Shown piece after piece: positions 11,696 to 35,460 of a DNA stretch of 64,000 nt. A program made the translations under genes and the position numbers. The notes under the pieces are model-generated. The model was given only the letters and a program-made list of their open reading frames with translations, did not search any database and was not told where the DNA came from. The number at the start of each line of letters is the position of its first letter. Within the stretch, counting starts at the first letter, position 1. The DNA is from Epithemia pelagica (Eukaryota; Protista; Bacillariophyta), in assembly GCA_946965045.2 (NCBI GenBank), contig OX337230.1, positions 4,216,001 to 4,280,000 of the forward strand, written 5' to 3'.

Positions 11696-12397
11696 TTACT
11701 TGGTTTTGTGGTTCCAGGAAAACCATTGCTTCCAGGCAGATTTATTAGATTGGCTGGTGGTGCCGGAGGAGGAAATCATGGTACCCCCACTACTAAGACT
11801 ACTGCAACAGTGGTGGAATGATGGATCACAAGCAATCGTAGTCGTGGTCAACGGGTGAGTCGGTGGTTGCTGCTGGGAATTAGATTTGGAGGAGGAGACG
11901 ACTGGGTCTCGTCGTTGTTTGCTTTGCTTGGCTGCTGCAGCGGCTGACTCTTGGAGTAGTCGACGTTCTGTTGGGATGAAAGATAGAATAGAGAATTCCA
12001 CAAAACCAACCAACCAACGAACAAGCAAACGCAAAACATCCATCAAAGTAGTGTGTGAGACTCATTCATTGTATCGTCTTGCTGCTTATTTGTAGAAATA
12101 ATTCTATGTTTGAATGAATCATTGTACTCTCTGCAAGGCCGAATGAATATATGTCAGTATATCGCTTCTCTTACCAAGGCCAAAGTCGTACAAGGGGGCA
12201 ATTGGCGAGTTCGAAGTGACAGCAGCGGCTTGGAGGCACAAGAGAGGCAGTCGAATGGGAGGACGTGGGGATTGGTGGGAAGGATCAACGACTCGAACGC
12301 GGCAGACCGACAGCAAGGAATGGTCGTCGTTGTCGTTGTCAGTGTTGTGATTGTGATAACACGAGGACGCTTGTTTCATGGGTCTTGGTTGTTTCAT
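11696..12397 (-). CDS. Small UMA-like-domain protein without UBA tail (~164 aa); join(12175..12397,11696..11967)
   Basis: The spliced product reads CRVRVVDPSHQSPRPPIRLPLLCLQAAAVTSNSPIAPLYDFGL^ERRLLQ. The phase-1 GTAAGA...CAG intron (11968-12174) sits at the same codon as in the two paralogs at 16685 and 35460. Confidence 0.72.
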
Positions 12398-12794
12398 CAA
12401 TGATTCGTTCGTAAGAGAGAGAGAGAGAGAGGTGGTGAAAAATGAGAGATAGTGTGCGTTTGTCTCTTGTGTTGCGAGGAAAGAGAGAGAGAACAACAAG
12501 AAGCATGTACGCAAAAGCAGCAGAAGCCCTTCCAGCGTTTGTGAGGAGGTTCGAGCGAGTGTGTGGCGGAGTCATCACCTCGCGCGACTGGCACCTCTCT
12601 TTTGTTTGTCGCGACTGATGACGGTCCTGCGCGCGCATGCCAACCGCAACCGCACGTGACTCAAGATCCGGGTATTCTGCTGCTCGCCCCCTCTAAATTA
12701 TACTGGGACACTTTTCTCTGAGCTTTCGCCCCCTCCTGCCCTTGATTTTGGGGATGCCACAAATCTTCTTGTGTTTGGTTCAACCTATTCGACC

Positions 12795-13631
12795 ATGAGC
12801 TCTCCCTCCGCTGCTGCCGCTGCTGCGGCTACGACCGCCATGTTTTCCGTGGCTGGTAAAAATGTCTTGGTGACGGGAGGATCGCGTGGGATTGGATACA
12901 TGATTGCCAAGGGGTTTTGTGAACAAGGGGCCAATGTCTTGCTGACGAGTCGATCGGAACAAGCTTGTCACGAGGCGGCCACCACTCTCAAGTGTCGTTA
13001 CGTGGTTTCTACCCTGTCCCATCGACAAGGTTGTGAAGCCTTGGCCCAACAGGTGGCGAAATTCTTTGACAATCGACTCGATATTTTGATCAACAATGCC
13101 GGTACCAGTTGGGGCGAACCGCTGGACCGCGAGAGTGGAGCGGCCAATTGGGGCTTTGACAAGGTCTTGGACTTGAATGTCAAGAGTATTTTTTACTTGA
13201 CCCGCGCCTGTTTGCCGTATTTGGAACAGGCTGCCACGGCCGATCATCCAGCGCGAATCATTAATGTCGGCAGTGTGGCCGGTCTCACACCGCAAGATGC
13301 TCCCACTCATGCCTACGATGCCTCCAAGGCAGCCGTCCATCAATTGACACGCAAATTGGCGGCCGATTTCGCCCCCAAGTCCATTACCGTCAATGCCGTG
13401 GCACCGGGCTTTGTGCCCAGTCGCATGAGTGCTGGATTGGCCACGTGGGGAGCCGACGAACAAGCCTTGACAGCCAGTGTTCCATTGAAGCGCATGGGCA
13501 AGGATACCGACATGGCGGGAGCCTGTGTGTACTTGTCCAGTGCCGCTGGATCGTGGGTCACAGGCACTGTCTTGGTGGTCGATGGAGGAGCCGTAGGAGC
13601 TCAACAATTGTCCTTTACGTCCCATTTGTAA
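12795..13631 (+). CDS. Classical short-chain dehydrogenase/reductase (RhlG/FabG-like), possible peroxisomal PTS1 (-SHL)
   Basis: VTGGSRGIG NAD(P) motif, LINNAG, YDASK (YxxxK), VNAVAPG, VDGG. The start could instead be ATG 12840. Confidence 0.92.
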   Translation: MSSPSAAAAAAATTAMFSVAGKNVLVTGGSRGIGYMIAKGFCEQGANVLLTSRSEQACHEAATTLKCRYVVSTLSHRQGCEALAQQVAKFFDNRLDILINNAGTSWGEPLDRESGAANWGFDKVLDLNVKSIFYLTRACLPYLEQAATADHPARIINVGSVAGLTPQDAPTHAYDASKAAVHQLTRKLAADFAPKSITVNAVAPGFVPSRMSAGLATWGADEQALTASVPLKRMGKDTDMAGACVYLSSAAGSWVTGTVLVVDGGAVGAQQLSFTSHL

Positions 13632-14133
13632 ACCAACCAAAAACAAGACACGAACAAGAAGAAGAAGAACAAAGCTATTCACACAAACTAGAAGTGAGTT
13701 GTGGTCTCGATCTATTAGGAAGCGGAATGATCCGATTCAATGTGAACCAATCGAGGATAAGGCACATCTATCGCTATAGTAGCTTCTTTTTTGGAGGGGA
13801 CGAATGAGACGCCCAAAAAAGAAGAAGAAACGAACAGCACACACACCGTGCCGAACGAACGAACTTCCCACCCACACCCAATCGAGCGTGCGAATGACAA
13901 GAGAACCCATGCGACTGGAAGGATAGTTGTCGTAATAGAAAGAGTATTAAACTAGCGTTGAAACGGATTTGTCCTGGAACACCACCCAATCGAAAACAAA
14001 CCCACACTCTAGATAGTCCGAGAGAGAGGGAGAGTTGTGGCTCTCTCTCACAGTTTGTATAGTAATTCTTTCCCTTTTTGTGGTGGAACACTTGTGTGTG
14101 TCGTCGGTTCCTTCCTTCCGTTCGGTATTCGTT

Positions 14134-16263
14134 CTATTCGGGCGGCCGTCCTTGTCGTCGTTTGGTGTGGCGGTTGGGATGCGGTTCGTCGTATTTCCGA
14201 TCGGGTCGTCGGAGCAGTCTCCGTTGTTCTTGTTCTTGTTGTGAACTACTACTACTACTACTATTACGAGTAGGATTCCTGCTTGGATTGTGAGACGGTG
14301 ACGTCCTTCTCGTTGTGGTGGCATAGAGGAGTGTGGCCACGCCTCCCGTTCCCAACACGAGGGTGGGCCACAGGGGCCAAACTGTGCCGTCGGACCGTCC
14401 TCCTCCCAACAACCGCAGCCACAAGGAGGAGGATCGCGCCATGAGATTCGACACCATGGATTGGACCATGCCTCCCGGTATTACTCCTACCAGTCCATTG
14501 GAAACGGCCCAATAACTGGCCAGTCCCAGACTGCTGGCGGTCAGGGCCCATCGAGCACTGGTTCCGACGGCGGAACTGGCCGCTTGTCGCGTCGTCCGGG
14601 ACATCCAATTCAGGGCCGATGTCGTAAAGGGACGCGTCACGCGTCGAAATTGCGCCCACATGGTGGCAATGGCGGCTTCCACAATAATACGGGTCGCATC
14701 CTCGTCCGACAAGAGACTGTCAAATTCGTCGTCGTCGTCATCGTCATCCAGTGCCTGCAAGGGATCCTCCTCCTCATCGTCGTCGTCAATTTCTTCTTCC
14801 TCTTCTTCAATGGCACTGACAATGGCCGAATGATCGGCCGCCATGGACGTGGATTGCGGGGGCAATCCCAATCCTCGCGCCATGGACTGCGCCTGTTCCT
14901 GGGACAATCCCCCCGTCAAATCATTGGCACCAACATCCAATCCCAAATCACTCGCCGCGGATGATTCTTCGTCGAGATCGAGACGGCGACCACCGTGGGG
15001 ATGCAAGGCGGCCGTCAACCTCGCCGATGGCAAGGCTCGATCCAAGATGCGACGATGATGTTCCTCTTCTTCTTCTTGTTCTTCATGATGCTGTACCGAA
15101 TGGATCCAGGAGGAGGTTTCCTCGGGATGCTGTGCCAGTCGCCTCGCATTGTTGTGGTGGTGACCACCTTGTTCCAATTGTTGTTGTTGTTGATAGCGTT
15201 CGCGTCCGAGCAACAAACTCATGAATTGGGGACCGAGAAATTGTCCCATACCGGGTCGTTCCAAGACTTGTCGATGCCGGCGGGGTAAGCGTCGAATAAA
15301 GGCCGTTCGTTGGTCGGGTGTCAAACCGGGCAAAAAGTACAAGACCAGGTACCGATGCAAACTGCCCGAATTGGACTCACTGGAGTGGTGCAAAGTGGAC
15401 ATGAAAAAGTCGTGCAAGGATTCTTGCGTCAAGAGTTGAACAAGTCGGTCCGGCAACAATTCGCCAAAGCCCCGATACCGGGCATAATGATAAAATTCCG
15501 ACACGGCATAGCGTTGCACGTGTTGCATGGTCAGGGCCGACGTGGCCGTGGCCGCCACCAAGGCACAAAAGGCCGTATAGGGCAAGATTATATACAAAAA
15601 GACTGTCACGGACAGCAACCAGGCGGCCACCAGCCGGGTAATGCGTTGTCTCAAGTCTCGTTCGTGGTCTTCGTATTCTTGTTGCGTCAAGGTAGCTGAA
15701 TTGTTGTAGTGGTTGACATGGTGGTTGGAACCATTGTACTGCGCCTGTGCCGTCAAGGACGAAAGCAATTGAGTGTTCAACATGGTCAAGGGACCGTACT
15801 GATTGTTATTGTTGTTGGCGGAAGCAGACGGAGGTGCCACCTTGTGCACCGGTGGCGACGTCATGCCCAAGGAGGAATGATGCGGATAGTGGGACGTATC
15901 GGGAAATCGAATGATTGGCGTCATCATGGAAGATGACATGCCCGATTGAACGGATTCATCCGTGCAATAGGTTCGTGCTTCGCGACTCGTATTCAAGGGA
16001 ATCCGCATATCGTGAGGTTCATCCTCATGTTCGTCATGGTGTTCCTCCTCATGGTCATCATGTTCGTCATCATCATCCTCGTGACTGTCGTTGCCAGTGC
16101 GGGGACGAACCACGACTTCTCGTGCCGGTGGTTTCCGATCGTCTTCCTCTTCCTCATCATCTAATAATACACGGTCGTTGCTATCCACATCGTCTCCCTC
16201 ATCCTCGTCATTGTCGTCGTCCTTCGAAGGCGGTCTCTTGGTGTTGGGGTCTGCCGGTTTCAT
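14134..16263 (-). CDS. Hypothetical low-complexity membrane protein (709 aa)
   Basis: Long intronless ORF with acidic/His/Asn tracts, two N-proximal hydrophobic segments (LVAAWLLSVTVFLYIILPY; TAFCALVAATATSALTM) and C-terminal hydrophobic segments. Confidence 0.75.
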   Translation of the reverse strand: MKPADPNTKRPPSKDDDNDEDEGDDVDSNDRVLLDDEEEEDDRKPPAREVVVRPRTGNDSHEDDDDEHDDHEEEHHDEHEDEPHDMRIPLNTSREARTYCTDESVQSGMSSSMMTPIIRFPDTSHYPHHSSLGMTSPPVHKVAPPSASANNNNNQYGPLTMLNTQLLSSLTAQAQYNGSNHHVNHYNNSATLTQQEYEDHERDLRQRITRLVAAWLLSVTVFLYIILPYTAFCALVAATATSALTMQHVQRYAVSEFYHYARYRGFGELLPDRLVQLLTQESLHDFFMSTLHHSSESNSGSLHRYLVLYFLPGLTPDQRTAFIRRLPRRHRQVLERPGMGQFLGPQFMSLLLGRERYQQQQQLEQGGHHHNNARRLAQHPEETSSWIHSVQHHEEQEEEEEHHRRILDRALPSARLTAALHPHGGRRLDLDEESSAASDLGLDVGANDLTGGLSQEQAQSMARGLGLPPQSTSMAADHSAIVSAIEEEEEEIDDDDEEEDPLQALDDDDDDDEFDSLLSDEDATRIIVEAAIATMWAQFRRVTRPFTTSALNWMSRTTRQAASSAVGTSARWALTASSLGLASYWAVSNGLVGVIPGGMVQSMVSNLMARSSSLWLRLLGGGRSDGTVWPLWPTLVLGTGGVATLLYATTTRRTSPSHNPSRNPTRNSSSSSSSQQEQEQRRLLRRPDRKYDEPHPNRHTKRRQGRPPE

Positions 16264-16684
16264 GGTGCTTTGTTGGAGTGACGCGTTGTGTGTGTGTGTG
16301 TGTGCGACGTTTGGAAGGTTTTGGTTGTGGAGAGACAGCCCCTGGAACCACTCTACTACTACTGCTTCAACTCGAAAGGACTTTGGATGCTACGACAAGA
16401 AACATTCCATGAGGACTATGGTAGAAGAGAGGAGGGAGGAGAGCACACTGCGAGACAGCGACTTGAGACTTTTGAGACCTGCGGGTTGTGCCTCGGCGCA
16501 CATTCGCTGCCAAATCAACGGGGGGCGGGGGTGAGTGAGTGAGTGCGAGCGAGCGAACCAAAAAAAGGTGGTTCGTGTGTTCTTCGCCCGTCCTCCAAGA
16601 CTCAGGAGTCGGTTTCGCCGCGGGACTCACGCGGTGGTGAACGACGACGCCATTTCACCATCAACCTTTTCATCTCTATCGACC

Positions 16685-17151
16685 ATGGTGGTGATGGCTT
16701 CGGACGATCTCCCCTATCCCAATTTGGTGACATGTCGGGTGGTACTCCAAGGGAGTACGAAGGGCATGGACAAGCCACCGGTCCGATTGACACCCGACTG
16801 TCTGCAAGCGGCCGAAACGTTGCGATTGCGACCCGTCTATGATTTTGAACTGGGTAAGGAAAGCACAACCATTCTCCATGGTTCTGGATGATGATCGATT
16901 CGTGGTCTGACCCTTGTCATTCATTTTGGCGTGTGGCGTTAGAAAAACGAGTCTTGGCGCAGGATGAACTGCGACGATCGAGTAATACGAGTAGTAGCAG
17001 CAACAATCCATATGATGCCGAGGAACTCAAAAAGGCGGTCTTGGCCAAAATGAAATCTGTCACCAAGGCGCAAGAAGAAATTTGTGTGGCCTTGTTGGAA
17101 GATCACAAGTACGATTTGAAAACCTCGATTGAAGCCTTTTATGCGTCCTAA
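16685..17151 (+). CDS. UMA-like + UBA-like protein (UBAP1-like architecture, 125 aa); join(16685..16853,16943..17151)
   Basis: Spliced sequence: MVVMASDDLPYPNLVTCRVVLQGSTKGMDKPPVRLTPDCLQAAETLRLRPVYDFEL^EKRVLAQ...AVLAKMKSVTKAQEEICVALLEDHKYDLKTSIEAFYAS. The intron 16854-16942 is GTAAGG...TTAG, phase 1. Confidence 0.8.
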
Positions 17152-17398
17152 ACATATGCCGAATATGGGGATGCAGATGGTTCAAATGCCGCACACAACA
17201 ACAACAACCACGGGAACATTGTACTATTACAGCAAATATTCGTGCAATTGTCATGTATAGTAACAAATGATAGAGAAACAAGGACAACAACAGTACAGCA
17301 TCTTGAGAAGCATGCCTTGTTTGGCAGTAGGAGGAGCCGGTACAAGACGATATGGTCCAACCTCTCTATATTAGCTATTGGAGAATACTCTGGAATGG

Positions 17399-18678
17399 CT
17401 ACGCGACCTTGTACTTATCCTCTCCATGATTCACATTATCGTCATTCCGGTCCACCTCGTCGGGCTCCAGCTGCGAATCCACAGACTTCTCCTTGGTCTC
17501 GGTGGTGGTAGCTGCACTGGTCGGCTCCTCCTCCTCCTCCTCGGACGAAACAATCTCGATAGACTTTGTAGACTCTTCCATGGTCTCGGTACTGGTAACC
17601 TTAGCTCCACTGGTCACCTCCTCCTTCGACGAAACAATCTCGATGGACGATACTAAAAAGTCAATTGATTGAGATTTGCCCAAGCGATAGGCATAGCCAA
17701 AGAATACACAGCAACAGATCAGCCAGATACCAGCGCAAACACCCATGTCCGTGTTGTTATCCCAGATGCACCTCGCCATATATGACACGGCCTCATTGAG
17801 GCCAATGTAAAATACTGCCAAGAGCAGTTTGTGGGTCCATGAGACAATGTAATAGAGGTTCCCATTCGATGGTCGATGATCGTCCTCGTGGTCTCCCATG
17901 ATCCGAAAATAAAACTTTCGAACATGTATCGCGATTCACGTAAACTCGATCACGGACAAGTTTTTTCCGCGTGTTGCCACAAAGAACGCCGTCGAGAGGA
18001 CTGCCAACCATGGCGATATCACTGATACAATGCGAGCGCCGTCCAGAGCACCCCAGCAATCCATATTCAAAATGTTTCCCACAAAGGATGCTTGACTCGC
18101 CGCAATGAGAACCAGAGAGTTTTGTGCGCGACCAATCGCCACCAGGAGTATGGCCGCCAGTGTTCCGAGGATCGGACCGCCCGCGGCAATCATGGCTTCA
18201 TCAAAAAGACTTGAACTGAACGTGTTGGGTCTAACAAAGGCCCCCAAAGAAGGGGACAAAAATGATGGGGTAGAATTCCACACCCAGCATCACCATCACA
18301 ATGGCGTGCCCGACTTCGTGAACCATGACGGCGACAAAGTAGTAGAACACAAAGTCTCGTCCCATCTGATTCTCTATGTTGCGGCTTTCGACTTCTGATT
18401 TTTGCCAGGCGGAGCAGCCTTACCCAGTTCAGAACAGTCGCAACAAAATCGTTGAAATAAGAAGGCTTTTTGTTACCATCCCCATCTTCTGACGACACAA
18501 CGCGGATATTCTCGGATGGGCGACTAGCTTCGTTGTTTGTTTTGTCGTTTTCAAGGGTCGTGTCGTCGTTGGACAAACGCGTTGTTGTCTCCTTTGATTC
18601 AACTTCTTCTTTGGCCACTGGTTCTTTGTCCGCCCAGCCGCGCAACAGCGTAGTAGTACTGGTCGTTGTCGCTTCCAT
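17399..18678 (-). pseudogene. Peptidase M50 (site-2-protease-like) pseudogene, copy A
   Basis: Relative to the intact copy at 33386 there is a net -29-nt deletion near 18395, a +1 G at 18241-18245, and CGA->TGA at 17936-17938. The HEVGH coding sequence is still present but out of frame. Confidence 0.85.
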
Positions 18679-20118
18679 CCTTGACAAAACTCTTAGAGAG
18701 GCTCGTAAAAAAGCAGTTGATCCGAAAACCAAGACGTTTTGGTTCGGCTTCGTTTGTATGGCAAAGCATATCCAATCAACATGTGAATGCGGAACAAACT
18801 TTAATCAAGCCAAATACTCGGAACACCGGTCCATATTTTGCAGATCCACGAGTTACTCATGTTTTTTGTGTTTCCAGTCGCGCGACTTCCCACTCGCTCA
18901 AACGTACGCACAAACGCTGGAATGGATGGCGACTGCGGATCATGTTCGTGTCATCTCTTGTCTCTTGAATTCTTGTTATGGTTGCTGTTCGTTCCCTCGT
19001 TGCAATCAACACCACTGGGATGCTCTATACTGCTTTCCTGCCGCTTCATTATTCCATTGACATGGTTCGAGTAAGGTGGGAGTAGAGAGAAACTAACCAG
19101 AACAATACGACAGCAGCAATATCAATATCATCAAATCCATGGTGACCAGGGCGAACACCCAATTGTGATTGTCTCTATCGAGTCGAATTACTCCACCACT
19201 ATAGTGAGGCGCTCACTAATTGGTCGGCTTGGTCCAACGATTGGTTTTTTTGGATTTCTCGCAAAGGAGCGTTCGTATGGAGTGGTCCACATGACAACGA
19301 ATCTTGAATGTAGGCATATAATATACTGTCCAAAGTCAAACGCCAATGGACCCGCGACGAATCGCATACACGGAAACATTCTCCATTGGTCTGTTTTTAG
19401 CAGCACCACCGGAACGTTTCGCCCGCATTGGTCCGTCCACAATCTGGAACACTGTATCTATGGAACTAACCCTCGACAGGATCACGTTCGTTTGTAGTTC
19501 TTTCCATGTGTGCACGCGACAAATCATGATCCCAAAGCACACTATGTCCAACGAACGGACATAACCGATAGTCAGAATCATGTTGGGAAAAAGCCTATGG
19601 GTCCAGATATGCAGCACACACACCCTCACAACATGTTAGGCATTCTCACGTACCGTGTTGTCACCAAATAAAATCTGGACAAACTTCACACACGGAAACC
19701 AAACGTCCGGATGGACTCCAAACTGCGAGTCAGATTTGAGAAAAGACCACAATGGTAGACAAGGACGACACACGCCCGGTTGATGCATTTTGTTATAGGC
19801 CAAGAAGTATCAAAGGCGTTGGCAGGCACTGCTCACTTTACTCCAAAGACACATCACATGGAGGGTGTAGGATCCTGGTACCTCCAACCCCAACGTTGAT
19901 GATGCAACGTCCATCCGAATTGCAATGTCATTGGCCAGATATTACAATGTCCACCTGTTTCCTGTAGTCCGTCGTAGTGCCAGTGCCAGAGGCCTTTCCT
20001 AGCGATTCCAGTGGCCCACACATGGCTGGCGGGAGAGATGGTCCTCTCGTGTCTTGTAGAAGCAAGACAAATATATAGAGTAGTGGTGCAGACCGTTGCC
20101 GCAGCACAGCGTCTCTCT

Positions 20119-22685
20119 TCATCCTTCCTCCCAGTCCCAAAGACTCACGCCGTTCATGGCCATGCCAGCCGCAAAAATACCCACTCCCAACAACATGTTG
20201 GCATACAAATACGGAGATTGTCCTCCTGCTTGTTGGCGTGGTGGTTGTTTGGGAAGAAGCATGGCCGTACCTTCCATAGTATTAGGCTGCTGCTGGTGAT
20301 GATGATGATGATGACTGCCGCTATTCGTACTGTTGTGACTGTGATGGGAATGACTGGAAATGTGCAAACTGACCGACAGTCCTTGTCCTTGTTGTTCATG
20401 TTCGTGTGGCAGGGATCGACTTGTGGTTTCGGTTGTGGTTTCGGTCGTGGTGGCACTCGGAGGACGTTGATGATGATGATGTCCCTTCATGAGTCGTTTG
20501 AAATCGTCAAAGTCAATCCGTCCGAGATTGGATTCGACTTGGGTCAAACTTTCGAGCCAGACCTTTTCCAAATTGTCGGCATCGACCGAGTGTCCCAACA
20601 TGTCTCGCAAATCTTGCAAGGTAATATACCCCTTGCGTTGCATATCCATGCGATCAAAGGCCAATTGCAAATTGCGATCGTCAATCTTGGCTTGAGATAA
20701 GACGGTGGACAGAAATTCCCGCCAACCAATCGTGCCTCCCCCATCCTCTTGTCGTCGAGGTTTGCCGGCCGCCATGGATTCCAACATGGAATGAATGTCC
20801 TGTTCCGTCAAGAGGGGTCCGAGGGCACCCGTTTCGGCGTATTGGAGTAGCAAGCCCTTCATGGCGTGGAGGGAAATTTCGCCCTTGCCTTCGGTATCCA
20901 TGGTTTCAAACTGGGTCCGCAATTCCACCAATTGTTCTGGTTGCAAGGTAAAACTCAAGACTTTGGACAAGAGTTTTTGCATATCCGATTGTTCCTTAAA
21001 GGCCATGAGGGCTGAAATGGTTTTGGGATGAATCGTCGTCGTATTATTGTTGCTGTTCGTGTGTCGGTCCTTTTTTCTGCCCCAGACTTGAATCCAGGCA
21101 TCGCGTTGACATTCCTTGGCCGTGGGCCGTAAGAGTGGATTGGGATTCAAGAGTCGTTGGACAAAGGCAATGGCTTGGGGACTCACACCATGCCACAATT
21201 CGGCGGGTGCAAAATGGAGTTGGGCCCGTTCAATGTTGCGCTTGACCAAGAGGGGATGTTCGCCGTCCAATCCACCAAAGGGGGTTTCCCCCGACAAGAG
21301 CAAGTAGGTAATGACGCCCAGGGCCCAAATATCGCCCTTTTCATCGTACTGGCCGCGAATCACTTCGGGTGCCACAGTATAGGGCGTTCCGACCTTTTCG
21401 TGATGCAATTGTCCCAAACAAAAGTGTTTGGACAAGCCAAAATCAATCATGCGCAATTCACTGGCCGGGTCGGGGGTGGAAAACAAGAAATTTTCCAATT
21501 TCAAATCGCGATGAATAATGCCCTTGGAATGCAAATAGCGCACGGCCGACAACATTTGTTTGACGAGTTTGGCACATTCATGTTCGGTATAATGAAACTC
21601 GGGTTGTTCATCGAGTCGATCAAACAAGTCGCCGCCCAAACACAATTCTTGCACAATATAAATATAATGATTGCTTTCGTAGACTTCTTCAATGCGGACA
21701 ATATTGGGATGATCGAGTTGACACATGATGTAAATTTCATTCCGCAATTGTTTCAAGCCGAGCGTGGATCCAATCTGCCGCAAATCCAAAATTTTGACGG
21801 CATACTTGACCAAGGTGGCCTTGTGCGTCACGAGTCGGACCACACCCGATACGCCCGAACCCAAAATCAACCCATCCGAAACACCATCGTACACATCTTC
21901 AATCGGACGACCAAAAGATGGCTGTCATAATAGTTGGAGAGAGAGAGAGAGTATCATGATAATAATAGATAGAGTCGTAAGATTGAACGAGTAATACAGA
22001 ACCAGAATACACACACAAAACAAGAACATACACAAAACGACAAACAGAGGAACGGTGTCAGATGTCAAGCTCCTTCACTGCCGACCGGCATTGTAAAGAT
22101 GTTCTCCTCTTCCATATGGGTTCGTACCTCAATGCGCACAACGGTTTGGGACAAGTGTCCATCGGCTACCATTTCTTGTCGCAAACTGGACAAGGCCAAG
22201 ACATTGCTGGCCGAGGGCACGCGATTCATGCCTGTTGTCGTCGTGGTGGAAGTGTTGACATGGCTATTATGTCGGGAACTGCGAGGCGTCGGTGTCGTGA
22301 CGGCCGACGAACAGGACAAGGAGCGATCCAAGGGCCAGGGTCGTCGTCGGTTGCGGGATCCATCCAAGGAGGAGGCCCCCGACGAATATCCGGGACGCAA
22401 GGCCCAGCGCGATCGTTTCATGGCTCTCATCCACAAATTGTTGTTGTTGTTGTTGTTGGTATTGTGGTTGTTTGGATTGTTGTGATTGTTGTTCAAGAGT
22501 GGATCGGTAGCTCCTTGTTCTGGTTGTTCTACTTCTTCGGGAGTTGTGGAAGTTTGCACTTCAATCAAGGCCGATCGCAATCGAGGAGGGACATCGTAGT
22601 ATTGTCCGGTCGATCGTCGGCGGTGATGAGGATGATGATTGCCCGAAGTCCCTCCCCAACTCGATTGCGTCGTCAAGGTACTCAC
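20119..22685 (-). CDS. Calcium-dependent protein kinase (CDPK-like, kinase + EF hands), ~786 aa; join(22128..22685,20119..21921)
   Basis: Motifs LGSGVSGVV, YAVK, HRDLKLEN, DFGLS, GTPYTVAPE, and EF-hand-like loops DTEGKGEIS and DMQRKGYIT. A phase-0 intron 21922-22127 (GTACGA...ACAG) joins ..TVVRIE to PSFGRPIEDVYDG.., which explains the orphan 22065-22685 ORF. Confidence 0.9.
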
Positions 22686-26709: not shown

Positions 26710-29700
26710 CTATTGCGTGGTCTGGATGGCTTCCAATTGGACGGCCTGGGAGGAGAGACAGACCAACTCAAACGGACCTTCTTGTTTGGGAATATAGCGA
26801 CTGACCATGAGCACATAGGTACCGACCGGCACCATCGTCCGATCCGCTACCAAAAAGCCATGACGATACTTGCCACTGTCCAAAACGGCCCGACCAATGG
26901 CTTGATTCAACCCTTGGCCGGCCCTGGCGACGGGCAAGACCACGACATTGACGGCCGTGTTCTTGGCCGTGGCGACACGGAGTTCCAGCATGGTATTGGG
27001 TTCGGCAATGGTCAAGGAATACATGGGGTTTTGAAATTGTTGCTGGGAACCCAAGGGACCGCCACCATTCAAACGAAAGTGACCCTGACGATGGAGGCGA
27101 TGCGGCAGAGTGGGTCGTGGTTTGGACAAGACAAAGGATTCCGTCGAATAAACGGAGAGAGTATATCGCAAATCATTGCTCTTTTGATACTGCGACAAGA
27201 CCAGTGACAAATGCTTATCCTCCGCAGTGGTGGCATCGTATCGAACTAGAACATGAGGATTGTTGGTATAGGCCCCGGTCAAGACGCAATTGCCACTTTT
27301 GCCGGGATACCAAATGGTTTCCTTCTGACCCTGATTTCGATGAATGTGAACCGTCAAAAAATCCGATACTTCGGCACCTTCTTGTTCTTGCTTGGACACG
27401 TGTCGGGAAATGAGGATCCAAATGGATACCTTGCGGTTCGATGTGGCACGACAAATGGCCTCGTCCGATAGGGTCACAATGTACTGCGGATTGTCTCCCA
27501 CATTAAAGGTATCGTCGTAGGGTCCTTGAGTTTTGGGCCACCGACCATGCAAGGTGGTCCGATATCGAAACAAGAAGGGATTCCACGATAGGTGAAAGTT
27601 TTGAAAGTATTGAAGAATATCCTCCCAACAAATCCAAAAGACCCCATCGTCTTGCATCCGTCGTGCTTGTTCGGGATGGTACTCCAATTCAGCACACAGT
27701 GTGGCATCCTTCCAGGCCTCGGTATCCAGGGCTGAGTAGCGGCCTTTCCATCCCTGCAAGGCCCATGGGTTTTTTAGTTGCAACAAGCGAACGCCTCGAC
27801 TGGTTTCCACGACCCGCAATACGGCATAGGCGTGTCCCAAGACCAATCCCAGTCGATCGGCCGCCGCTTGCGAGGCAGCATCGGTCCGTGACAAGTGGGA
27901 GGATACCGTCATGACACAATCCCCAAAGGAACTCGCACTGACAATGCGTTCCCACGCGCGTTCGGGTAACATTTCAAAATCACGGGGTTGCTTGGCCGTT
28001 TCATCCATATTGTTCTCATTCGTACTTGTAGTGTTGTTCATGTTGAGTTGTTTGGAAAAGTGCACTCGTTCGGGAATCCATCCCGTCAAACTAAACAAGT
28101 CGACGCCACTGTTGGAACCGGGAAAATCGTAGCCTCCACAGAGTTTGAGGTAGGCCTTTTCCATGAAGCAGACCCACAATTCCAAGTACTGCGGCGCGGT
28201 TGTGGGTGTGGAATGACTGCACAAGAGATTGCCATATTGATCAATGGGCAAGTAGTCGTCAATGACGACACATCGCGCCACGCCATTGAGCCATAGTTTG
28301 ACCATGTATTTGCCGAGTGGATTGTACACGGGTCGTTGTCGTCCATCTGGTTCTTGTTTTTGTTGTGGATACAAACTGCTGGTAATCAAGGGTTGACCCA
28401 ATCGTCGTTCCAAGGCGGCCGTGACACACAAACTGGCAATAAAGGAACAATCCGTGACATATTCTTGTTGAATGGTATAAGGTGAGAGACCGGTCGTTGG
28501 CTGAATGAGCACGGGCGTTTGTGGTTGTGCGGATCGGTGGTGTCGACGTCGTCCTGTTTGTTGTTGGTGTCGAATTTGTACAATTTCATCGGGTCGGGCC
28601 CATTTCCAAAAGACGGCTTGTTGCTTGACCGACTGGCGCAAGGGTCCCTTGGGATCGGTAAATCGTGCGTGTTGGCGTGGTTGTTGAATGGTCCGTGTGG
28701 CTTGTTGACACAATTCCTCGGCATCGTCATCGGACCAGGGCAAAAACAAGCCCGACACGGTGGTTGAAGATTCGGTTAAAATGTCCACTTCTTCGGCCGT
28801 CAAGGATTGTGGTTGTTGCTGGTGATTGTTTTCGGATGGTTGTCGCAACACTTGTTTGGTGGTTGCTGTTCCACCAGGATGGCCATGGATCTGCCGTTGT
28901 GATTGTGATTGTTGTTGCTTCTTGAGCTTTTCGATTCGATCCAAGATGGATTCGAGACGTCGTTTCATGGTAGCAATGACCTCTTCTTGGGCAGCAGAGT
29001 GGCGGTTTGTGGCTGCAAAGTGTTGTTGTTCTTCTTTGGCACACCGCAAGGCTTGCAAATGCAACTCGGCCGCTTGGATATAGGCGGCTTGAATCTCTGG
29101 CATTCGATCATTCCGTTCCGTAGTAGAGGATTCATCCAAATCCAAGGCATGTTTGAGTTGGGCCGAAGCTTGTTCCGCCAATCGATCCAGTTTGGCACGA
29201 GTTGGAGAAGTAGTACTTGTAATTCCGTGATGGAGAATGGGAGGGTTGATTCGTGCCGTCGGTTGGGTCGGAGTCTTGTGGTTGTTGGTGTTGGTGGTGT
29301 TTTGAGACGCGAGCAACCGTTCCGCCACTTGTTCGTATTTGACAATGTTGTGTTGCATCAAAGAACGTTTCCGTTCTGCTTCTTCTTCTTGGCTGGTGGT
29401 TTGGGTCGACGACGACGACGACGACAAGTGAAACTGGACAAAGCGACGCATCAAATACACGGCTTCGTAATACTAAGAAGAATCAAAACAAGAAGAAGAC
29501 AAGAAGAAGAACAGGCCAAAAAAGCAATGGTATTCCAATGAGTAACAGTACTACTCTATAGAGCGGATGCGGTTGTTTTCATTCTCCCACAATAACAACA
29601 ACAATATAACATCCACACATACCTTGGTGGCTGCTTCGACCGCCTGTTCGGGTTGAGTCGCCAATTGCTGTGCCTCTTGCAGCAATTCAAAAATATTGTC

Positions 29701-29733
29701 TTCCAAGGACGACGAGGATGATGATTGTGTCAT
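26710..29733 (-). CDS. CAPN7: Calpain-7/PalB-like cysteine protease with N-terminal MIT-like domains (~957 aa); join(29623..29733,26710..29472)
   Basis: Catalytic triad QQEYVTDCSFIASL / GHAYAV / LKNPW, plus NPLGKYMVKLWLNGVAR, GYDFPGSNS and WIPER. Two helical MIT-like segments. Phase-0 intron 29473-29622. Confidence 0.9.
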
Positions 29734-30181
29734 GATGCACTGACGGACTGTGTGAAAGTGTTTTTTTCTGGAGATCAACCTGGCCACTGGCGCACCTATA
29801 CAATAGGATGACAAGTCTCCTCGTTGTTTGGTTTCAGTGTCAATCAATCGCTTCGTCTCCTCGACACAAGGCTTAGAGCAGGCGACCGCATCGGTACATC
29901 GTGCAATCACGACTTGAAGGAGATGAGACGACGACGAATGAATGAGCACCAGTCGCGTGGGGTGGATTTGGCGATGGGTCCCCACCAAAAAGTCGTTCCG
30001 AATCTTTCATCGCGTTATAGTCGCTTCTAGGTCTCGCTTCTGTAAAGGTATCTTTGGGGGACAAAAAAATCTTTTGGAGACCGGGTTATTGACAACACTC
30101 AGTTCTGAGTTCCATGGTCTATATTGGTTCTGTTCCACTCTTTGAATCCTACTACTACTCTGTATCCAACTATTATGAAAG

Positions 30182-31956
30182 CCATACTTTGGTCGTCCGA
30201 TTCAAGATGTGTACGATGGCGTTGCGGATGGGTTGATTTTGGGTTCGGGCGTATCGGGTGTGGTCCGATTGGTGACGCACAAGGCCACCTTGGTCAAGTA
30301 TGCCGTCAAAATTTTGGATTTGCGGCAGATTGGATCCACGCTCGGCTTGAAACAATTCCGGAATGAAATTTACATCATGTGTCAACTCGATCATCCCAAT
30401 ATTGTCCGCATTGAAGAAGTCTACGAAAGCAATCATTATATTTATATTGTGCAAGAATTGTGTTTGGGCGGGGACTTGTTTGATCGACTCGATGAACAAC
30501 CCGAGTTTCATTATACCGAACATGAATGTGCCAAACTCGTCAAACAAATGTTGTCGGCCGTTCGGTACTTGCATTCCAAGGGCATTATTCATCGTGATTT
30601 GAAATTGGAAAATTTCTTGTTTTCGACCCCGACCCGGCCAGTGAATTGCGCATGATTGATTTTGGCTTGTCCAAACACTTTGGGTTAGGACAATTGCATC
30701 ACGAAAAGGTGGGCACGCCCTATACCGTGGCACCCGAAGTGATTCGCGGTCAGTACGATGAAAAGGGCGATATTTGGGCCTTGGGCGTCATTACCTACTT
30801 GTTACTGTCGGGGGAAACACCCTTTGGTGGATTGGATGGCGAACATCCCCTCTTGGTCAAGCGCAACATTGAACGGGCCCAACTCCATTTTGCACCCGCC
30901 GAATTGTGGCACGGTGTGAGTCCTCAAGCCATTGCCTTTGTCCAACGACTCTTGAATCCCAATCCACTCTTGCGGCCCACGGCCAAGGAATGTCAACGCC
31001 ATGCCTGGATTCAACTCTGGGGCAAACACAAGGACCGACACACGAACAGCAACAATAATACGACGACGATTCATCCCAAGACCATTTCGGCCCTCATGGC
31101 CTTTAAGGAACAATCGGATATGCAAAACCTCTTGTCCAAAGTCTTGAGTTTTACGCTGCAACCGGAACAATTGGTGGAATTGCGGACCCAGTTTGAAACC
31201 ATGGATACCGAAGGCAAGGGCGAAATTTCGCTCCACGCCATGAAGGGGTTGCTACTCCAATACGCCGAAACGGGCGCCCTCGGACCCCTCTTGACGGAAC
31301 AGGACATTCATTCCATGTTTTCCATGGCGGCGGGCGGCAAACCACGACGACCAGAGGACGGCGGGGGTACCATTGGCTGGCGCGAATTTCTGTCGACCGT
31401 CTTGTCCCAAGCCAAGATTGACGATCGCAATTTGCAATTGGCCTTTGATCGCATGGATATGCCACGCAAGGGATATATCACCCTGCAAGATTTGCGCGAC
31501 ATGTTGGGACATTCCGTCAATGCCGACAATTTGGAAAAGGTGTGGCTCGATAGTTTGACCCAAGTCGAATCCCATCATCTGGGACGGATTGATTTTGACG
31601 ATTTCAAACGACTCATGAAGGGACAGTATCATCCACAACCTCCGAGTGCCACCACGACGGAAACCACTACCGAAACGACCAGTCGATCCCTGCCACACGA
31701 ACAGGAACCACCACAACCACAACAAGGGGAACCACTTTCGGTCAGTTTGCACATTTCCAGTCATTCCCATCACAGTACCAATAGCAACAGTCATCATCAC
31801 GGGCAGATGGAAGGTACGACCATGCTTCTTCCGAAACAACCACGACAAGGAGGACAATCTCCGTATTTGTATGCCAACATGTTGTTGGGAGTGGGTATTT
31901 TTGCGGCCGGCATGGCCATGAACGGCGTGAGTCTCTGGGACTGGGAGGAAGTATGA
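30182..31956 (+). pseudogene. CDPK pseudogene, copy B (exon 2 only, frameshifted)
   Basis: Retains the acceptor (AAG 30181) and PYFGRPIQDVY but has no copy of exon 1 upstream. A -1 frameshift (CCCC at 30627-30630 vs CCCCC in copy A) lies between HRDLKLEN and DFG. Confidence 0.82.
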
Positions 31957-33385
31957 GAAGGAGACGCTGTGCTGCGGGAACAGTCTGCACCACCACTCTA
32001 TATATATTTGTCTTACTTGGACAAGACACGACAGTACCATCTCTGATTAGCCAGGAACGGCGTCAGAGCCTCTGTCACTGGCGCACCGACAGACGTTTCA
32101 TGAAACAGGTCGACATGTATCCGGCCAATGACACTGCAATACGGATGGACGTTGCATCATCCAGGATCCTACACTCTCCATGTGATGTGTCTTTGCCTTT
32201 GATGCTTTTCGGACTGGAACAAAATGCACCAACCGAATGTGTGTCATTCTTGTCTACCACTGGCCTTCTGTCAAATCTGACTGGCAGTTTGGAGTCCATT
32301 TCTAAGGCATTGTGGCCTGTTTCAATGAGTCCCTGGTTGTGTACGTGAGAATTGTCATTAGGCATTGTATTGGACACGAACGTGGTTTCCGTGTTTCCCT
32401 CTTGTGAATTTTGTCCAGATGTATTCGGTGGGAACACGGTACGTGAGAATGCTAGACATGTTATCAGGGTGTGGTGCCTATCTGGTGCCATGCTGTGGAC
32501 TCATAGGCTTTTTTCCCACCATGCTTCTGACTATCGTTTGTCCGTTCGTTGGACATAGTGTGGTTGTGGCTCATGATTTGTCGCGCGCACAAATGGAAAT
32601 AACTAACAACGAACGGTATCATGTCGAGGGTACGTTCCATGGATACAGTGTTCCAGATTGTGGAAGGGTCAATGAGGGCGAAACGTTCCGATGGTGTTGC
32701 TCAAAACAGACCAATGGAGAATGTTTCCGTGTATGCCATTCGTCGCGGGTCCATTGTCGTTTGACATGGGATATTATGCCACACATGCAAGATTCGTTGC
32801 CTTGTGGACCACTCCATAGGAACGCCCCTTCCAAGCGAGAAATCCAGAAAACCTAATTGTTCCACCAACTCTTACGCCGACCCACCTCGCTATAGTGGTG
32901 TAGTAATTCGACTCGATAGAGACAATCACAGTTGAGCGTTCGCCCTGGTCACCATCGATTTGATGATATTGATATTGCTGCTCTGGTTAGTTTCGCTCTA
33001 CTCCCTCCCCACACGAACCATGTCAATGAAATTATGAAGCGGCAGGAAAGCAGTATAGAGCATCGCAGTGGCGTTGATTGCAACGAGGGAAATAACAGCA
33101 ACCACAACACAAGAATCAGAGACGACACGAGAATGATGCGCAGTCGCCATCGATTAGCGTTTGTGCGGACGTTTGAGCGAGTGTGGGATCGCGCGACTGG
33201 AAACACAAAAAAACATGAGTAACTCTCGTGCTTACCGGTTTTCTTGGCTTGATTAAAGTTTGTTCCGAGTTCACTTTTGTTGATTGTGTATGATTTATGA
33301 TTTGTCATACAAACGAAGCTGAACCAAAACTTCCTGGGTTTCGGATCAACTGCTTTTTTACGAGCCTCTCAGAGTTTTGTCAAGG

Positions 33386-34627
33386 ATGGAAGCGACAACG
33401 ACCAGTACTACTACGCTGTTGCGCGGCTGGGCGGACAAAGAACCAGTGGCCAAGGAAGAAGTTGAATCAAAGGAGACGACGTGTTTGTCCAACGACGACA
33501 CGACCCTTGAAAACGACAAAACAAACAACGAAGCGAGTCTCCCATCAGAGAACATCAACTTTGTGTCGTCGAAAGATGGGGATGGTAACAAAAAGCCTTC
33601 TTATTTCAACGGCTTTGTTGCGACTGTTCTGAAATGGGTAAGGCTGCTCCGCCTGACAAACTGGATCACTTGGATCAGCTTTCTGATTTCCATTGAAGTC
33701 GAAAGTCGCAACATTGAGAATCAGATGGGACGAGACTTTGTGTTCTACTACTCTGCCGCCGTCATGGTTCACGAAGTCGGGCACGCCATTGTGATGTTGA
33801 TGCTGGGTGTGGAATTCTACCCCATCATTTTTGTCCCCTTCTTTGGGGCCTTTGTTACACCCAAAACGTTCAGTCAAAACGTTTTTGATGAAGCCATGAT
33901 TGCCGCGGGCGGTCCGATCCTCGGCACACTGGCGGCCGTACTCCTGGCGATGGTTGGTAAAGCAAACAACTCTGTCGTTCTCGTTGCGGCGAGTTATGCG
34001 TCCTTTGTTGGGAACATTTCGAATTTGGGTTCCCGGGGCGATCTGGACGGGGGTCGCATTGTATCAGTCATCTCACCGTGGTTGGCACTCCTCTCGACGG
34101 CGTTGTTTGTGGCAAAACGCGGGAAACATTTGTCCGAGATCGAGTTTACGCGATTATCACTGCAGGTTGAAAAGTTTTATTTTCGGATTATGGGGGACCA
34201 CAAGGCCGGTCATGGGCCATCGAATGGAAAGCTCTATTATAATGTCTCATGGACGTGCAAACTGCTATTGGCAGTGTTTTACATTGGCCTGAATGATGCC
34301 GTGCCACACGTGTCGAATTGCATCGGGGATCCAAACACGGACATGAGTGTTTGCGCTGGTATCTGGTTGCTCTGCTGCTGTGTCTTTTTTGGCTATGTCT
34401 ATCGATTGGGCAAATCTCAATCGATTGACTCGTTAGTATCGTCCATTGAGATTGTTTCGTCAAAGGAGGAGGAGGAGGAGACCAGTGCAGAGGAGGAGGA
34501 GACCAGTGCAGCTACCAACACCGAGACCAATGAACCGTCTGTGGATTCACCGCTGGAGCAGCCCGACGAGGTAGACCGGAATGGCGATACTGTGAATCAT
34601 GGAGAGGATAAGTACAAGGTCGAGTAG
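33386..34627 (+). CDS. Peptidase M50 family intramembrane metalloprotease (413 aa), copy B
   Basis: HEVGH Zn motif, FVPFFGAFV, IAAGGP, and LDGG third ligand. The usual NxxP is degenerate here (NLGSRGDLDGG). Confidence 0.8.
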   Translation: MEATTTSTTTLLRGWADKEPVAKEEVESKETTCLSNDDTTLENDKTNNEASLPSENINFVSSKDGDGNKKPSYFNGFVATVLKWVRLLRLTNWITWISFLISIEVESRNIENQMGRDFVFYYSAAVMVHEVGHAIVMLMLGVEFYPIIFVPFFGAFVTPKTFSQNVFDEAMIAAGGPILGTLAAVLLAMVGKANNSVVLVAASYASFVGNISNLGSRGDLDGGRIVSVISPWLALLSTALFVAKRGKHLSEIEFTRLSLQVEKFYFRIMGDHKAGHGPSNGKLYYNVSWTCKLLLAVFYIGLNDAVPHVSNCIGDPNTDMSVCAGIWLLCCCVFFGYVYRLGKSQSIDSLVSSIEIVSSKEEEEETSAEEEETSAATNTETNEPSVDSPLEQPDEVDRNGDTVNHGEDKYKVE

Positions 34628-34961
34628 CCATTCCTAATTATTATTAAAGGTTGGACCATACGTACACCGCAAGCTATATCCGGACCTTGTCCATTATACC
34701 CCATAGTATACGATACCGGTAAGAAGCGACTCCTCATGCAACAGAAGGCATGCTCATGAAGATGTTGTCATGTTGTCTATCATTTTTACTATACATTACA
34801 GGAATATTTTTTGCTATATGGTACGGTTCCCGTGTTGTTGTTGTAATATGGCATTCGACTCGTATACGACGCATATTATTCCCGTGCTGTTGTTGTTGTT
34901 GTGTGGCATTCGGCATTTGACTCCTCGTCTACTATACGACGAATCCCCATTCGGCATTTTG

Positions 34962-35460
34962 TTAGGACGCATAAAAGGCTTCAATGGAAGTTTTCAAATC
35001 GTACTTGTGATCTTCCAACAAGGCGACACAAATTTCTTCTTGCGCATTGGTGACGGATTTCATTTTGGACAAGACGGCCTTTTTGAGTTCCTCCGCATCA
35101 TACGGATTGTTGTTGCTGCTATGATTCGTACTCGATCGTCGTTGTCCCTCTTGGGCCACGATTCGTTTTTCTAAATCCGCAGCAGCAATCCAAAAGGGTA
35201 AGAAACTAATACCAATCAATCAATCAATCGAGAGTCGAGAACCAAACGTCTTGTTGTGTGTGTGGTCCCCGGTGTGGTGGTGAGGATACCTTACCCAGTT
35301 CAAAATCATAGACGGGTCGCAATCGCAACGTTTCGGCCGCTTGCAGACAATCGGGTGTCAATCGAACCGGTGGCTTGTCCATGCCCCTGGTATTTCCTTG
35401 AAGTACCACCCGACAGGTGACCAAATTGGGATAGGGGAGATCGTCCGAGGCCATCACCAT
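34962..35460 (-). CDS. UMA-like + UBA-like protein, copy B; join(35295..35460,34962..35170)
   Basis: Near-identical to the 16685 gene, with the same phase-1 intron (35171-35294, GTAAGG...TTAG) and an intact frame. Confidence 0.8.

Follow-up and report, generated by a model that had tools for sequence, protein, structure and literature searches.

Within ESCRT-I, conservation is lowest in the fourth subunit, and Mvb12 of yeast has no sequence relationship to the UMA proteins of animals. To our knowledge, an equivalent fourth subunit has not been established in plants or in SAR lineages. The N-terminal half of the UMA domain (UMA-N) carries a VPF anchor, in which a conserved Pro, with a hydrophobic residue after it, inserts into a pocket of the TSG101/VPS37 head. 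This anchor is the hallmark by which UMA attaches to ESCRT-I, and mutating it abolishes ESCRT-I binding (10.1101/2020.01.31.927327; PMC10445733). The UMA residues conserved among MVB12A/B, UBAP1 and UMAD1 are Y-x-F-x-x-E (PMC10445733). In 2010, significant matches to the UMA domain were found only in Metazoa (PMC2881412); an N-terminal region with "tantalizing patterns" in common with UMA was noted in plant AT5G53330-type UBA proteins, but lacked statistical support (de Souza & Aravind 2010, PMC2881412).

Gene structure, splicing and duplication

Three small two-exon genes, g1, g2 and g3, are located in the window, i.e. the whole 64,000-nucleotide stretch of Epithemia pelagica DNA that was analyzed. 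On the reverse strand, g1 (11696–12397, 164 aa) consists of exon 1 (12175–12397), an intron (11968–12174) and exon 2 (11696–11967), and g3 (34962–35460, 124 aa) of exon 1 (35295–35460), an intron (35171–35294) and exon 2 (34962–35170). On the forward strand, g2 (16685–17151, 125 aa) consists of exon 1 (16685–16853), an intron (16854–16942) and exon 2 (16943–17151). All three give clean ORFs after GT..AG splicing. The intron is in phase 1 in each gene and cuts the Glu codon right after YDFxL (YDFxL/E). A family HMM detects the three exon-1 ORFs with E-values of 2e-23, 7e-23 and 3e-16 (2.7e-16 for g1), compared to 0.36 for the next-ranked ORF when 2,456 six-frame ORFs of the window, L001 and L002 are scored. 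The motif common to g1, g2 and g3 is far above chance.

Both g1 and g3 are expressed and spliced. In contigs of the RNA-like run X4, the g1 intron is exact, with 11967 joined to 12175 (CT..AC), and the g3 junction is seen as a loose end behind position 16853, where the sequence carries on with the 18 opening bases of g3 exon 2; neither the g1 joint nor the g3 junction is present in three DNA-like runs. The X4 contigs over g2 carry g3-type letters only. The first-pass annotation had described three small genes whose shared motif is interrupted by a phase-1 intron at one common codon and becomes whole only after splicing, and all of this is borne out, including the predicted junctions of g1 and g3 in RNA-like contigs.

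The genes g2 and g3 are recent copies, near-identical paralogues created by a 5.3-kb inverted duplication, which consists of 19 collinear inverted-repeat blocks that are 84–97% complementary. As both genes sit at the outer ends of this duplication (left arm, 16682–21945, holding g2; right arm, 30158–35466, holding g3), they are not independent members of the family. Their exons are 92% and 88% identical, with a dN/dS of 0.19, and their introns have diverged. In a sister assembly of 96% identity, a Copia element breaks g2 exon 2 at ∼17015–17019. The third gene, g1, is a divergent paralogue of g2/g3; compared to its L001 ortholog, the frame is kept through in-frame indels with a dN/dS of 0.43.

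A family of small diatom proteins

A HMMER search of 1.84 billion proteins with the exon-1 profile (cut-off E≤1e-3) returned 54 matches, of which ∼52 are real family members, all of them small proteins. Named members are from Entomoneis, Mayamaea and Epithemia, all raphid pennate diatoms, and are annotated as "hypothetical". The family, previously unnamed as such, has so far been named only in raphid pennate diatoms and, judging from these matches, appears confined to diatoms. Most database entries are exon-1 fragments that run through the splice donor; because the defining motif spans the intron, gene callers miss or truncate family members.

The N-terminal module (N-module) spans ∼55 residues with the consensus [HQ]YPNL..CRV..PPVRLP.[DE]CL.AA..P.YDFxLE[KR]x[VI]L. 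In g2, the exon-1 part (YPNL..CRV..PPVRL.PDCL..YDFEL; 16703–16853, forward strand), identified from alignments A1, A2 and A3 and the HMMER family search, continues into exon 2 (E-K-R-V-L...; 16943–16972, forward strand). A "G" directly follows YDFxL, at the same GT donor, in 43 of the ∼52 relatives, and E[KR]xVL follows YDFxL in the 9 spliced relatives. The intron position is the same in most relatives. In Mayamaea, gene model GKY91702.1 places a phase-1 intron of 86 nt in this codon, and the ortholog is syntenic, sharing microsynteny with the ion-channel genes of the window. Neither the 9 spliced orthologs (alignment A2) nor g1–g3 deviate from Y, D, F and E in the C-terminal block, and Y, F and E are invariant across 13 spliced diatom sequences. 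Conservation in the family is also among the highest at the Y, P and L of YPNL (Tyr7 and Leu10 at least 90%, alignment A3).

In g2 and g3, the N-module is followed by a short polar linker and a single C-terminal UBA_4-type domain. In g1, the N-module lacks the YPNL proline and continues into a Ser/Thr/Gln-rich low-complexity tail with a Trp-rich C-terminus; the UBA domain is absent. In g1-type paralogues, a low-complexity tail ending in a Trp/Lys-rich motif has taken the place of the UBA domain. The division of the three genes into two with a UBA-like end and one with a low-complexity tail had been recognized in the first-pass annotation.

The C-terminal UBA-like domain

The three-helix domains of g2 (17044–17148, forward strand) and g3 (34965–35072, reverse strand) match Pfam UBA_4 (PF14555), g3 above the gathering threshold of 21.8 bits (23.9 bits, E 3.6e-5) and g2 just below it (21.2 bits, E 2.5e-4). 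Orthologs score 26–34.5 bits, with E-values down to 1.8e-8. The AlphaFold2 model of an ortholog (pLDDT 88) has helices at residues 72–87, 91–100 and 105–115 with a pLDDT of 92–97. In Foldseek comparisons, this predicted bundle superposes onto FAF1, Dcn1, EDD, TDP2 and the p47 UBA with an rmsd of 0.6–1.7 Å, and the model also matches UBA_4 clusters of the Atlas. Full-length members of the family carry a UBA_4 domain at the C-terminus, and AlphaFold2 and Foldseek agree in predicting a UBA fold for it. FAF1, p47 (NSFL1C), Dcn1 and UBXN proteins belong to the same Pfam family and share the VT-x-A loop signature and the three-helix fold (rmsd 0.6–1.3 Å) with the diatom proteins. However, their domain is N-terminal and joined to UBX, SEP or cullin-binding modules, whereas that of the diatom proteins is C-terminal in a protein of ∼120 residues. 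By membership of this family only, the domain is expected to bind ubiquitin.

Comparison with UMA proteins

The likeness of the N-module to UMA, proposed in the first-pass annotation, holds for the C-terminal half. The UMA-C block of PS51497/PF28191 (Y-x-F-x-x-E, with a near-invariant Glu) is present and aligns with YDF[ST]LE of UBAP1/UMAD1; the invariant YDFxLExx[VI]L of the family, with LPxxC upstream, matches the C-terminal UMA half of these proteins. Using hhalign, the family aligns over about 10–24 columns (18–24 of them confident in the alignments scored) to a shallow UMA profile, built from vertebrate UBAP1 and mammalian UMAD1 only, without MVB12, with a probability of 66–90% and P of 1.5e-6 to 5.5e-5 (84–90% and 7e-6 to 1.5e-6; 66% and 5.5e-5 in a separate run by the tool itself). 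None of 300 column shuffles reaches the score of 29.6 (shuffle maximum 17.3), and a control comparison of UBAP1 with UMAD1 scores lower (17.9, probability 9.7%). A multiple-testing penalty applies to this likeness, and a P of 7e-6 across ∼25,000 families gives ∼0.2. When 2,460 ORFs are scored with a vertebrate UMA HMM, the first three places go to g2, g3 and g1 (L001). HMM-to-sequence scores between family and UMA are not significant (6–15 bits, E 0.02–3 even at Z = 20,000), and no metazoan UMA protein came up when the 1.84 billion proteins were searched with the exon-1 profile.

The N-terminal halves have no profile similarity by hhalign (probability 0.28%, P 0.21), and the VPF anchor is not conserved in the family, which has [HQ]YPNL instead. 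The equation of DDLPY with the DDVPF of UBAP1, made earlier, fails here, as LPY is a lineage-specific feature confined to g2/g3, and at that place g1 lacks a proline. Likewise, PDCLQ agrees with human UBAP1 partly by accident; PDSSQ or PDCNA is found in other vertebrate UBAP1s. As judged by profile comparison, the N-module thus corresponds to just one half of UMA as known from animals, which makes membership of ESCRT-I a possibility rather than an established role.

The match is collinear, with LP 16–18 residues before YDF in the diatom, UBAP1 and UMAD1 groups. The first 30 residues of the diatom N-module are highly conserved yet predicted as coil, followed by two helices. The N-terminus of UBAP1, modelled as a monomer with AlphaFold2, is laid out in the same way: coil covers UMA-N, and a helix then runs through YDFSLEKK. 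For the N-module, nothing was found in PDB, Atlas and fold searches.

Possible function and alternatives

We tentatively favor a role for the family as cytosolic, ubiquitin-binding adaptors of ESCRT-I, a reading to which we give somewhat less than an even chance. The UBA-like domain would bind ubiquitin or ubiquitinated cargo, and the N-module would be a docking element that folds on its partner. The leading candidate partner, also put forward with reserve, is the ESCRT-I core (VPS23/VPS37), as the second helix and its lead-in seem to reproduce the C-terminal half of UMA (LP-x3-L ... YDFxLExxVL), the part that UBAP1, UMAD1 and MVB12 share beside the VPF anchor. In this arrangement, g2/g3 would act as fourth subunits of the MVB12/UBAP1 kind that bind ubiquitin, with g1 as an alternative that does not. 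The anchor in the head-piece would have to be another one than in animals, given that the family lacks VPF and conserves YPNL in its place. It is rather unlikely that these are the first UMA-type (MVB12/UBAP1-like) fourth subunits outside animals, combining a UMA-C stalk/head helix with YPNL in place of VPF.

The N-module could instead belong to a lineage-specific UBA adaptor that docks on some other partner, the YDFxLE likeness to UMA being due to chance or convergence, with no role in ESCRT-I; this is not far from an even prospect. The lack of VPF and of similarity in the N-half (P 0.21), the non-significant HMMER scores, the failure to retrieve UMA proteins from 1.84 billion, the empty structure searches for the N-module and the apparent confinement to diatoms are all in its favor. 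However, the hhalign score exceeds that between UBAP1 and UMAD1, two accepted UMA subfamilies, the LP and YDF motifs are collinear in all three groups, and, as in UBAP1, the module is paired with a ubiquitin-binding domain. Motifs of the YPx(n)L type bind the V domain of ALIX, and the nearly invariant YPNL, in a segment predicted as coil, might recruit a Bro1/ALIX-family V domain, such that the adaptors feed the ALIX branch of the ESCRT pathway. This is improbable: an equally conserved ..CRV.. block adjoins YPNL, suggesting an interface larger than a short linear motif, and the g1-type members lose YPNL. The least probable reading is that the genes are nonfunctional, either decaying duplicates or fortuitous ORFs riding on the segmental duplication. 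The Copia element in g2 of the sister assembly and the exclusively g3-type transcripts over g2 would suit it, but the dN/dS of 0.19 between g2 and g3 with diverged introns, the exact splicing, the ∼52 relatives with intron and motif and the syntenic Mayamaea ortholog argue against it; for g1 and g3 it is largely refuted.

The family is a concrete candidate, being conserved and expressed and having a UMA-C-like helix and a UBA domain. If the ESCRT-I assignment is true, a UMA-like fourth subunit with a ubiquitin-binding domain predates the opisthokont/stramenopile split or arose convergently, and diatoms would have two alternative forms of ESCRT-I, one that binds ubiquitin (with g2/g3) and one that does not (with g1). 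Even without this link, these proteins would constitute an unannotated, conserved family of very small ubiquitin-system adaptors.

Relation to individual UMA and UBA proteins

UBAP1 resembles the diatom proteins in that a ubiquitin-associated fold comes after a docking module at the N-terminus, and in LP..C/S.. followed by YDFxLE[KR], with a helix through the motif. In contrast, UBAP1 has 502 residues compared to ∼125, and its SOUBA consists of three overlapping UBAs, compared to one UBA_4 domain of ∼40 residues. The diatom module has YPNL rather than VPF, a spacing 5–7 residues longer and no significant HMMER similarity to UBAP1. The C-terminal domain is thus not the UBAP1 counterpart that had been suggested, and the SOUBA of a UBAP1 ortholog is absent. 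The N-terminal MABP beta-prism of MVB12A/B is absent as well: there is no Pfam match to DUF2464, the diatom proteins are too small for it, and their model is free of β-structure.

UMAD1 is also small, with 7 of 10 residues identical in YDF-x-LE-xx-VL and LPxxxL 16–18 residues upstream. The parallel drawn earlier between g1 and UMAD1 extends to the UMA-C likeness and to the lack of a ubiquitin-binding domain in both. It does not extend to the anchor, since the UMA of UMAD1 is C-terminal and VPF-dependent (PMC10445733), whereas g1 lacks even the YPNL proline; the hhalign probability for UMAD1 and the diatom family is only 57%. The AT5G53330-type proteins are likewise non-metazoan UBA proteins, set apart by the description of their UBAs as UBAP1-like rather than UBA_4 (PMC2881412). 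The intron of vertebrate UBAP1 is located between Q and YDF, five codons upstream of the diatom intron in the Glu codon.

Gene Structure and Splicing

The three small genes of the window were spliced at their sole sensible GT..AG pairs, and each then yields a clean ORF. Gene g1 lies on the reverse strand (exon 1, 12175–12397; intron, 11968–12174; exon 2, 11696–11967) and encodes 164 residues. Gene g2, on the forward strand (exon 1, 16685–16853; intron, 16854–16942; exon 2, 16943–17151), encodes 125 residues, and g3, on the reverse strand (exon 1, 35295–35460; intron, 35171–35294; exon 2, 34962–35170), encodes 124. The first-pass annotation had proposed a common motif interrupted by a phase-1 intron at the same codon. 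Both features are found as described: CRV..PP[VI]RL..CLQAA..P[VL]YDFxLE[KR]R is present in all three spliced proteins, and the Glu codon following YDFxL is split in each gene. When a family HMM was run against the 2,456 six-frame ORFs of the window and two fetched loci, the exon-1 ORFs of the three genes gave E-values of 2e-23, 7e-23 and 3e-16, the next-best ORF reached only 0.36, and no fourth family member was detected in the window.

The predicted junctions of g1 and g3 were also recovered in contigs of a sequencing run (X4) that was called RNA-like from its coverage pattern and an intron-skipping contig, none of the four runs being recorded as RNA. Depth in X4 is high over ORFs and low or absent between genes. 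A contig joining 11967 to 12175, with CT..AC ends, matches the predicted g1 intron exactly, and a contig that reaches 16853 goes on with 18 bases from the start of g3 exon 2, as predicted for the g3 junction. Neither joint was seen in the three DNA-like runs. Transcripts lacking the predicted splices would have refuted the first-pass proposal, and on this point g1 and g3 hold up. Over g2 exon 1, the X4 letters are all of the g3 type; since contigs drop minor variants, expression of g2 is not readable from this run.

A Family of Diatom Proteins

An HMMER search of 1.84 billion representatives, queried with a profile of five exon-1 translations, gave 54 matches at E≤1e-3. Two long repetitive proteins were discarded; the rest are 56–203 residues long, with the consensus [DE]L[HQ]YPNL..C[RK]V.[LV]......[KQ]PPVRLP.[DE]CL.AA......P.YDF[AS]L. 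Forty-three matches are genomic ORF fragments with a Gly straight after YDFxL, which indicates that the GT donor is read through at the same phase-1 position, and the nine spliced matches go on as E[KR]x[VI]L. Named members come from Entomoneis paludosa (MMETSP1065), Mayamaea pseudoterrestris (GKY91702.1) and Epithemia clementina (KAL7570238.1). All of these are annotated as “hypothetical protein”, and the other matches derive from metagenomes or unlabelled assemblies. The family is unnamed, and gene callers mostly cut its proteins short at the intron.

In the Mayamaea gene model GKY91702.1, the same codon is interrupted by a phase-1 intron of 86 nt. This gene sits 4–10 kb from a 576-residue gene and two Ion_trans channel genes (13898–20313 of the Mayamaea locus, L002), which match the window at 56.7–58.5 kb and 51–55.6 kb, respectively. 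The proximity of the Mayamaea gene to homologs of the ion-channel genes of the window (51–58 kb) indicates microsynteny with window 51000–58500.

UBA Domain and Predicted Structure

In remote searches, the spliced window proteins were represented by their exon pieces or by spliced orthologs of other diatoms. Full-length members (P0011, P0027, P0034 and P0047) end in a Pfam UBA_4 domain, with E-values down to 1.8e-8. An AlphaFold2 model of the Entomoneis member P0011, computed with a 56-row family alignment (mean pLDDT of 88), has a short helix (residues 32–40) directly after LP..C, a longer helix (residues 49–67) beginning at F-A-L-E, and three more helices that make up the UBA domain. The last 40–50 residues match the UBA domains of FAF1, Dcn1, EDD, TDP2 and p47 with an rmsd of 0.6–1.7 Å. 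The UBA-like ends that had been noted from the sequence are therefore solidly assigned, by both the UBA_4 matches and the fold matches (Foldseek against the PDB, and Atlas).

Residues 1–30 of the P0011 model, which contain YPNL, CRV and PPVRLP, are coil (pLDDT 63–79) and constitute the best-conserved stretch in the family. Strong conservation in an N-terminal segment that the model leaves unfolded suggests that it serves as a docking element dependent on a partner. A disulfide or zinc site formed by the conserved Cys pair was considered and rejected, the second Cys often being Val or Ile.

The fold searches (Foldseek PDB and Atlas) matched nothing outside the UBA domain. Against Pfam, the exon pieces, a 40-residue junction peptide and the spliced orthologs matched only UBA_4 and UBA_8; for the conserved N-terminal part of ~55 residues (the N-module) this result is uninformative, because the Pfam copy lacks the UMA model and the control UMAD1 was also unmatched. 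Sequence searches of the PDB, queried with this peptide, with the UBA piece and with the family profile, retrieved neither a UMA protein nor any other meaningful match. In the ESM Atlas, searched by features, residues 1–66 were unmatched and the whole protein retrieved UBA clusters only.

Comparison with the UMA Domain

The UMA domain joins UBAP1, UMAD1 and MVB12 to ESCRT-I. Its N-terminal block (UMA-N) contains a completely conserved VPF that plugs into a TSG101/VPS37 pocket and is sufficient for head-piece binding (10.1101/2020.01.31.927327); changing VPF to AAA in UMAD1 abolishes binding (PMC10445733). The C-terminal block (UMA-C) has the pattern Y-x-F-x-x-E, with a “nearly absolutely conserved glutamate” (PMC2881412). 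Our UMA profile was built from vertebrate UBAP1 and mammalian UMAD1 sequences only; the database sequences retrieved with an 81-residue UMAD1 bait and a 95-residue UBAP1 bait bore those names, at 100% and 88% identity, respectively. Mammalian references, primate ones included, entered the comparison as proteins only.

A 13-sequence family alignment matched this profile with a probability of 84% (P = 7.4e-6, score 29.6, 18 columns), and a 53-sequence alignment with 90% (P = 1.5e-6, score 32.1, 43 columns). Nine spliced orthologs compared with UBAP1 alone in hhalign gave 66% (P = 5.5e-5, score 29.5, 24 columns). The confident columns comprise YDFxLE.. only, plus P.[DE]C weakly. Scores of 300 column-shuffled UMA alignments averaged 8.8 and peaked at 17.3, all below the observed value, and a reversed-alignment control scored 8.4. 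The accepted subfamilies UBAP1 and UMAD1, when compared with one another, reach only 17.9 (probability 9.7%), with only the YDF block aligned. At the HMM level, similarity is weak in both directions (8.5–14 bits when the family HMM is scored on UBAP1/UMAD1, 6–15 bits when the UMA HMM is scored on family members); the UMA HMM ranks g2, g3 and the g1 ortholog as the first three among 2,460 ORFs. Profiles of the N-terminal halves show no similarity between the family and UMA (probability 0.28%, P = 0.21).

Two residue-level arguments linked to the first-pass annotation did not survive. DDLPY was rejected as an equivalent of the VPF anchor, being peculiar to g2 and g3 and not conserved in the family: close relatives have DLQYPNL, the conserved YPNL lies two residues beyond the DDLPY position, and g1 has no proline. 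PDCLQ was likewise rejected as a sign of orthology with UBAP1. Within UBAP1, its Cys-Leu-Gln is confined to mammals (PDSAQ, PDSSQ or PDCNA stands in fragments of reptile-, fish- and other non-mammal-like type), and the identity with the human protein is partly luck. Family-wide, a collinear pattern is retained (LP-x3-[LV], 16–18 residues, YDFxLExx[VI]L), and 7 of the 10 residues in the YDFxLExx[VI]L block of UMAD1 are identical in the diatom family. The UBAP1 N-terminus, modelled by AlphaFold2 as a monomer, is arranged like the P0011 model, with coil to residue 44 and a helix through YDFSLEKK. In vertebrate UBAP1 (exon fragments P0183–P0211), an intron separates ..REVQ from YDFSLEKK. It precedes the diatom intron by five codons; the two are close but differ in position and phase. 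The proposed UMA identity thus stands in part: the UMA-C half is present, and statistically suggestive in the profiles, whereas the UMA-N/VPF half is absent or replaced. Because this missing or replaced half is the functionally decisive one, we do not classify the family as UMA.

Duplication of g2 and g3

Genes g2 and g3 are the outermost genes of a 5.3-kb inverted segmental duplication, whose arms (16682–21945 and 30158–35466; blocks 84–97% identical) enclose a unique core of ~8 kb. A count of three independent members was rejected, g2 and g3 being one recent duplication. Exon identity between the two is 92% and 88%, the introns are diverged (45/124 aligned positions) and dN/dS is 0.19, from which we conclude that both copies have been retained under constraint.

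Exon 1, used as query in a word-index protein search, matched only the same loci of a sister assembly in ENA, 96% identical. There, a Copia-type retrotransposon of ~6.2 kb (gag_pre-integrs, RVT_2; 10329–16515 of the sister locus, L001) lies in g2 exon 2, inserted at window position ~17015–17019, where it separates the N-module from the UBA domain. On both sides of the insert, the g2 exon sequence equals that of the window (100% identity); the insertion is a young polymorphism knocking out one of the two duplicates.

Possible Function

Proteins that dock to the ESCRT-I core and also carry a ubiquitin-binding domain are a recurring theme, exemplified by yeast Mvb12 and UBAP1. We regard the family as a small UBA adaptor carrying a putative UMA-C-like docking motif. 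It may work like a UMA protein, docking to the ESCRT-I core and presenting its putative ubiquitin-binding domain, a reading we hold tentatively and at distinctly less than an even chance; the collinear pattern and the shuffled controls are in keeping with it, and the N-terminal halves show nothing in common. That the N-module serves another partner and its UMA-like motif is coincidental has close to an even chance. A YPxL/Bro1-type link, to which the YPNL conserved in the main form of the family might be referred, seems improbable. Lack of function would concern g2 only, the copy with the Copia insertion in the sister assembly and with low dN/dS relative to g3, and we consider it very improbable.

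In 2010, the UMA region matched metazoan proteins only, with no more than “tantalizing patterns” in plants (PMC2881412). The literature searched contained no report of UMA-like proteins in stramenopiles, nothing relevant on plant UMA or diatom ESCRT-I, and no ESCRT link for AT5G53330.

Members without a UBA Domain

A second family type (g1, P0021, P0026 and P0032, and probably P0013) has no UBA domain; its C-termini, which in g1 occupy window 11696–11740, are short and rich in Trp and Lys (..AWKQWFSWNHKTK, ..FSKMKKWW and ..LSWKMPWQ are examples from the group). Because these ends start where UBA-type members have L.KMKSVT, they resemble a first UBA helix that has been cut short, and they might serve as amphipathic tails binding a membrane or a partner. 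The g1 ortholog in the sister assembly (L001, 4978–5694) differs by 26 non-synonymous substitutions and several in-frame indels; its reading frame is intact, and both the core motif and the Trp-rich end are retained (dN/dS 0.43). Identity between assemblies is lower in the g1 exons (87–90%, with the in-frame indels) than in the intron (94%) or the surrounding DNA (96%), a pattern that points to rapid evolution, rich in indels, in the low-complexity parts of the coding sequence.

Between g1 and g2 lies an intron-less ORF of 709 residues (14134–16263, reverse strand), whose sole Pfam match is weak and TFIIA-like (E = 2e-4, below the cut-off). It is kept in the sister assembly and has the top contig depth in X4.
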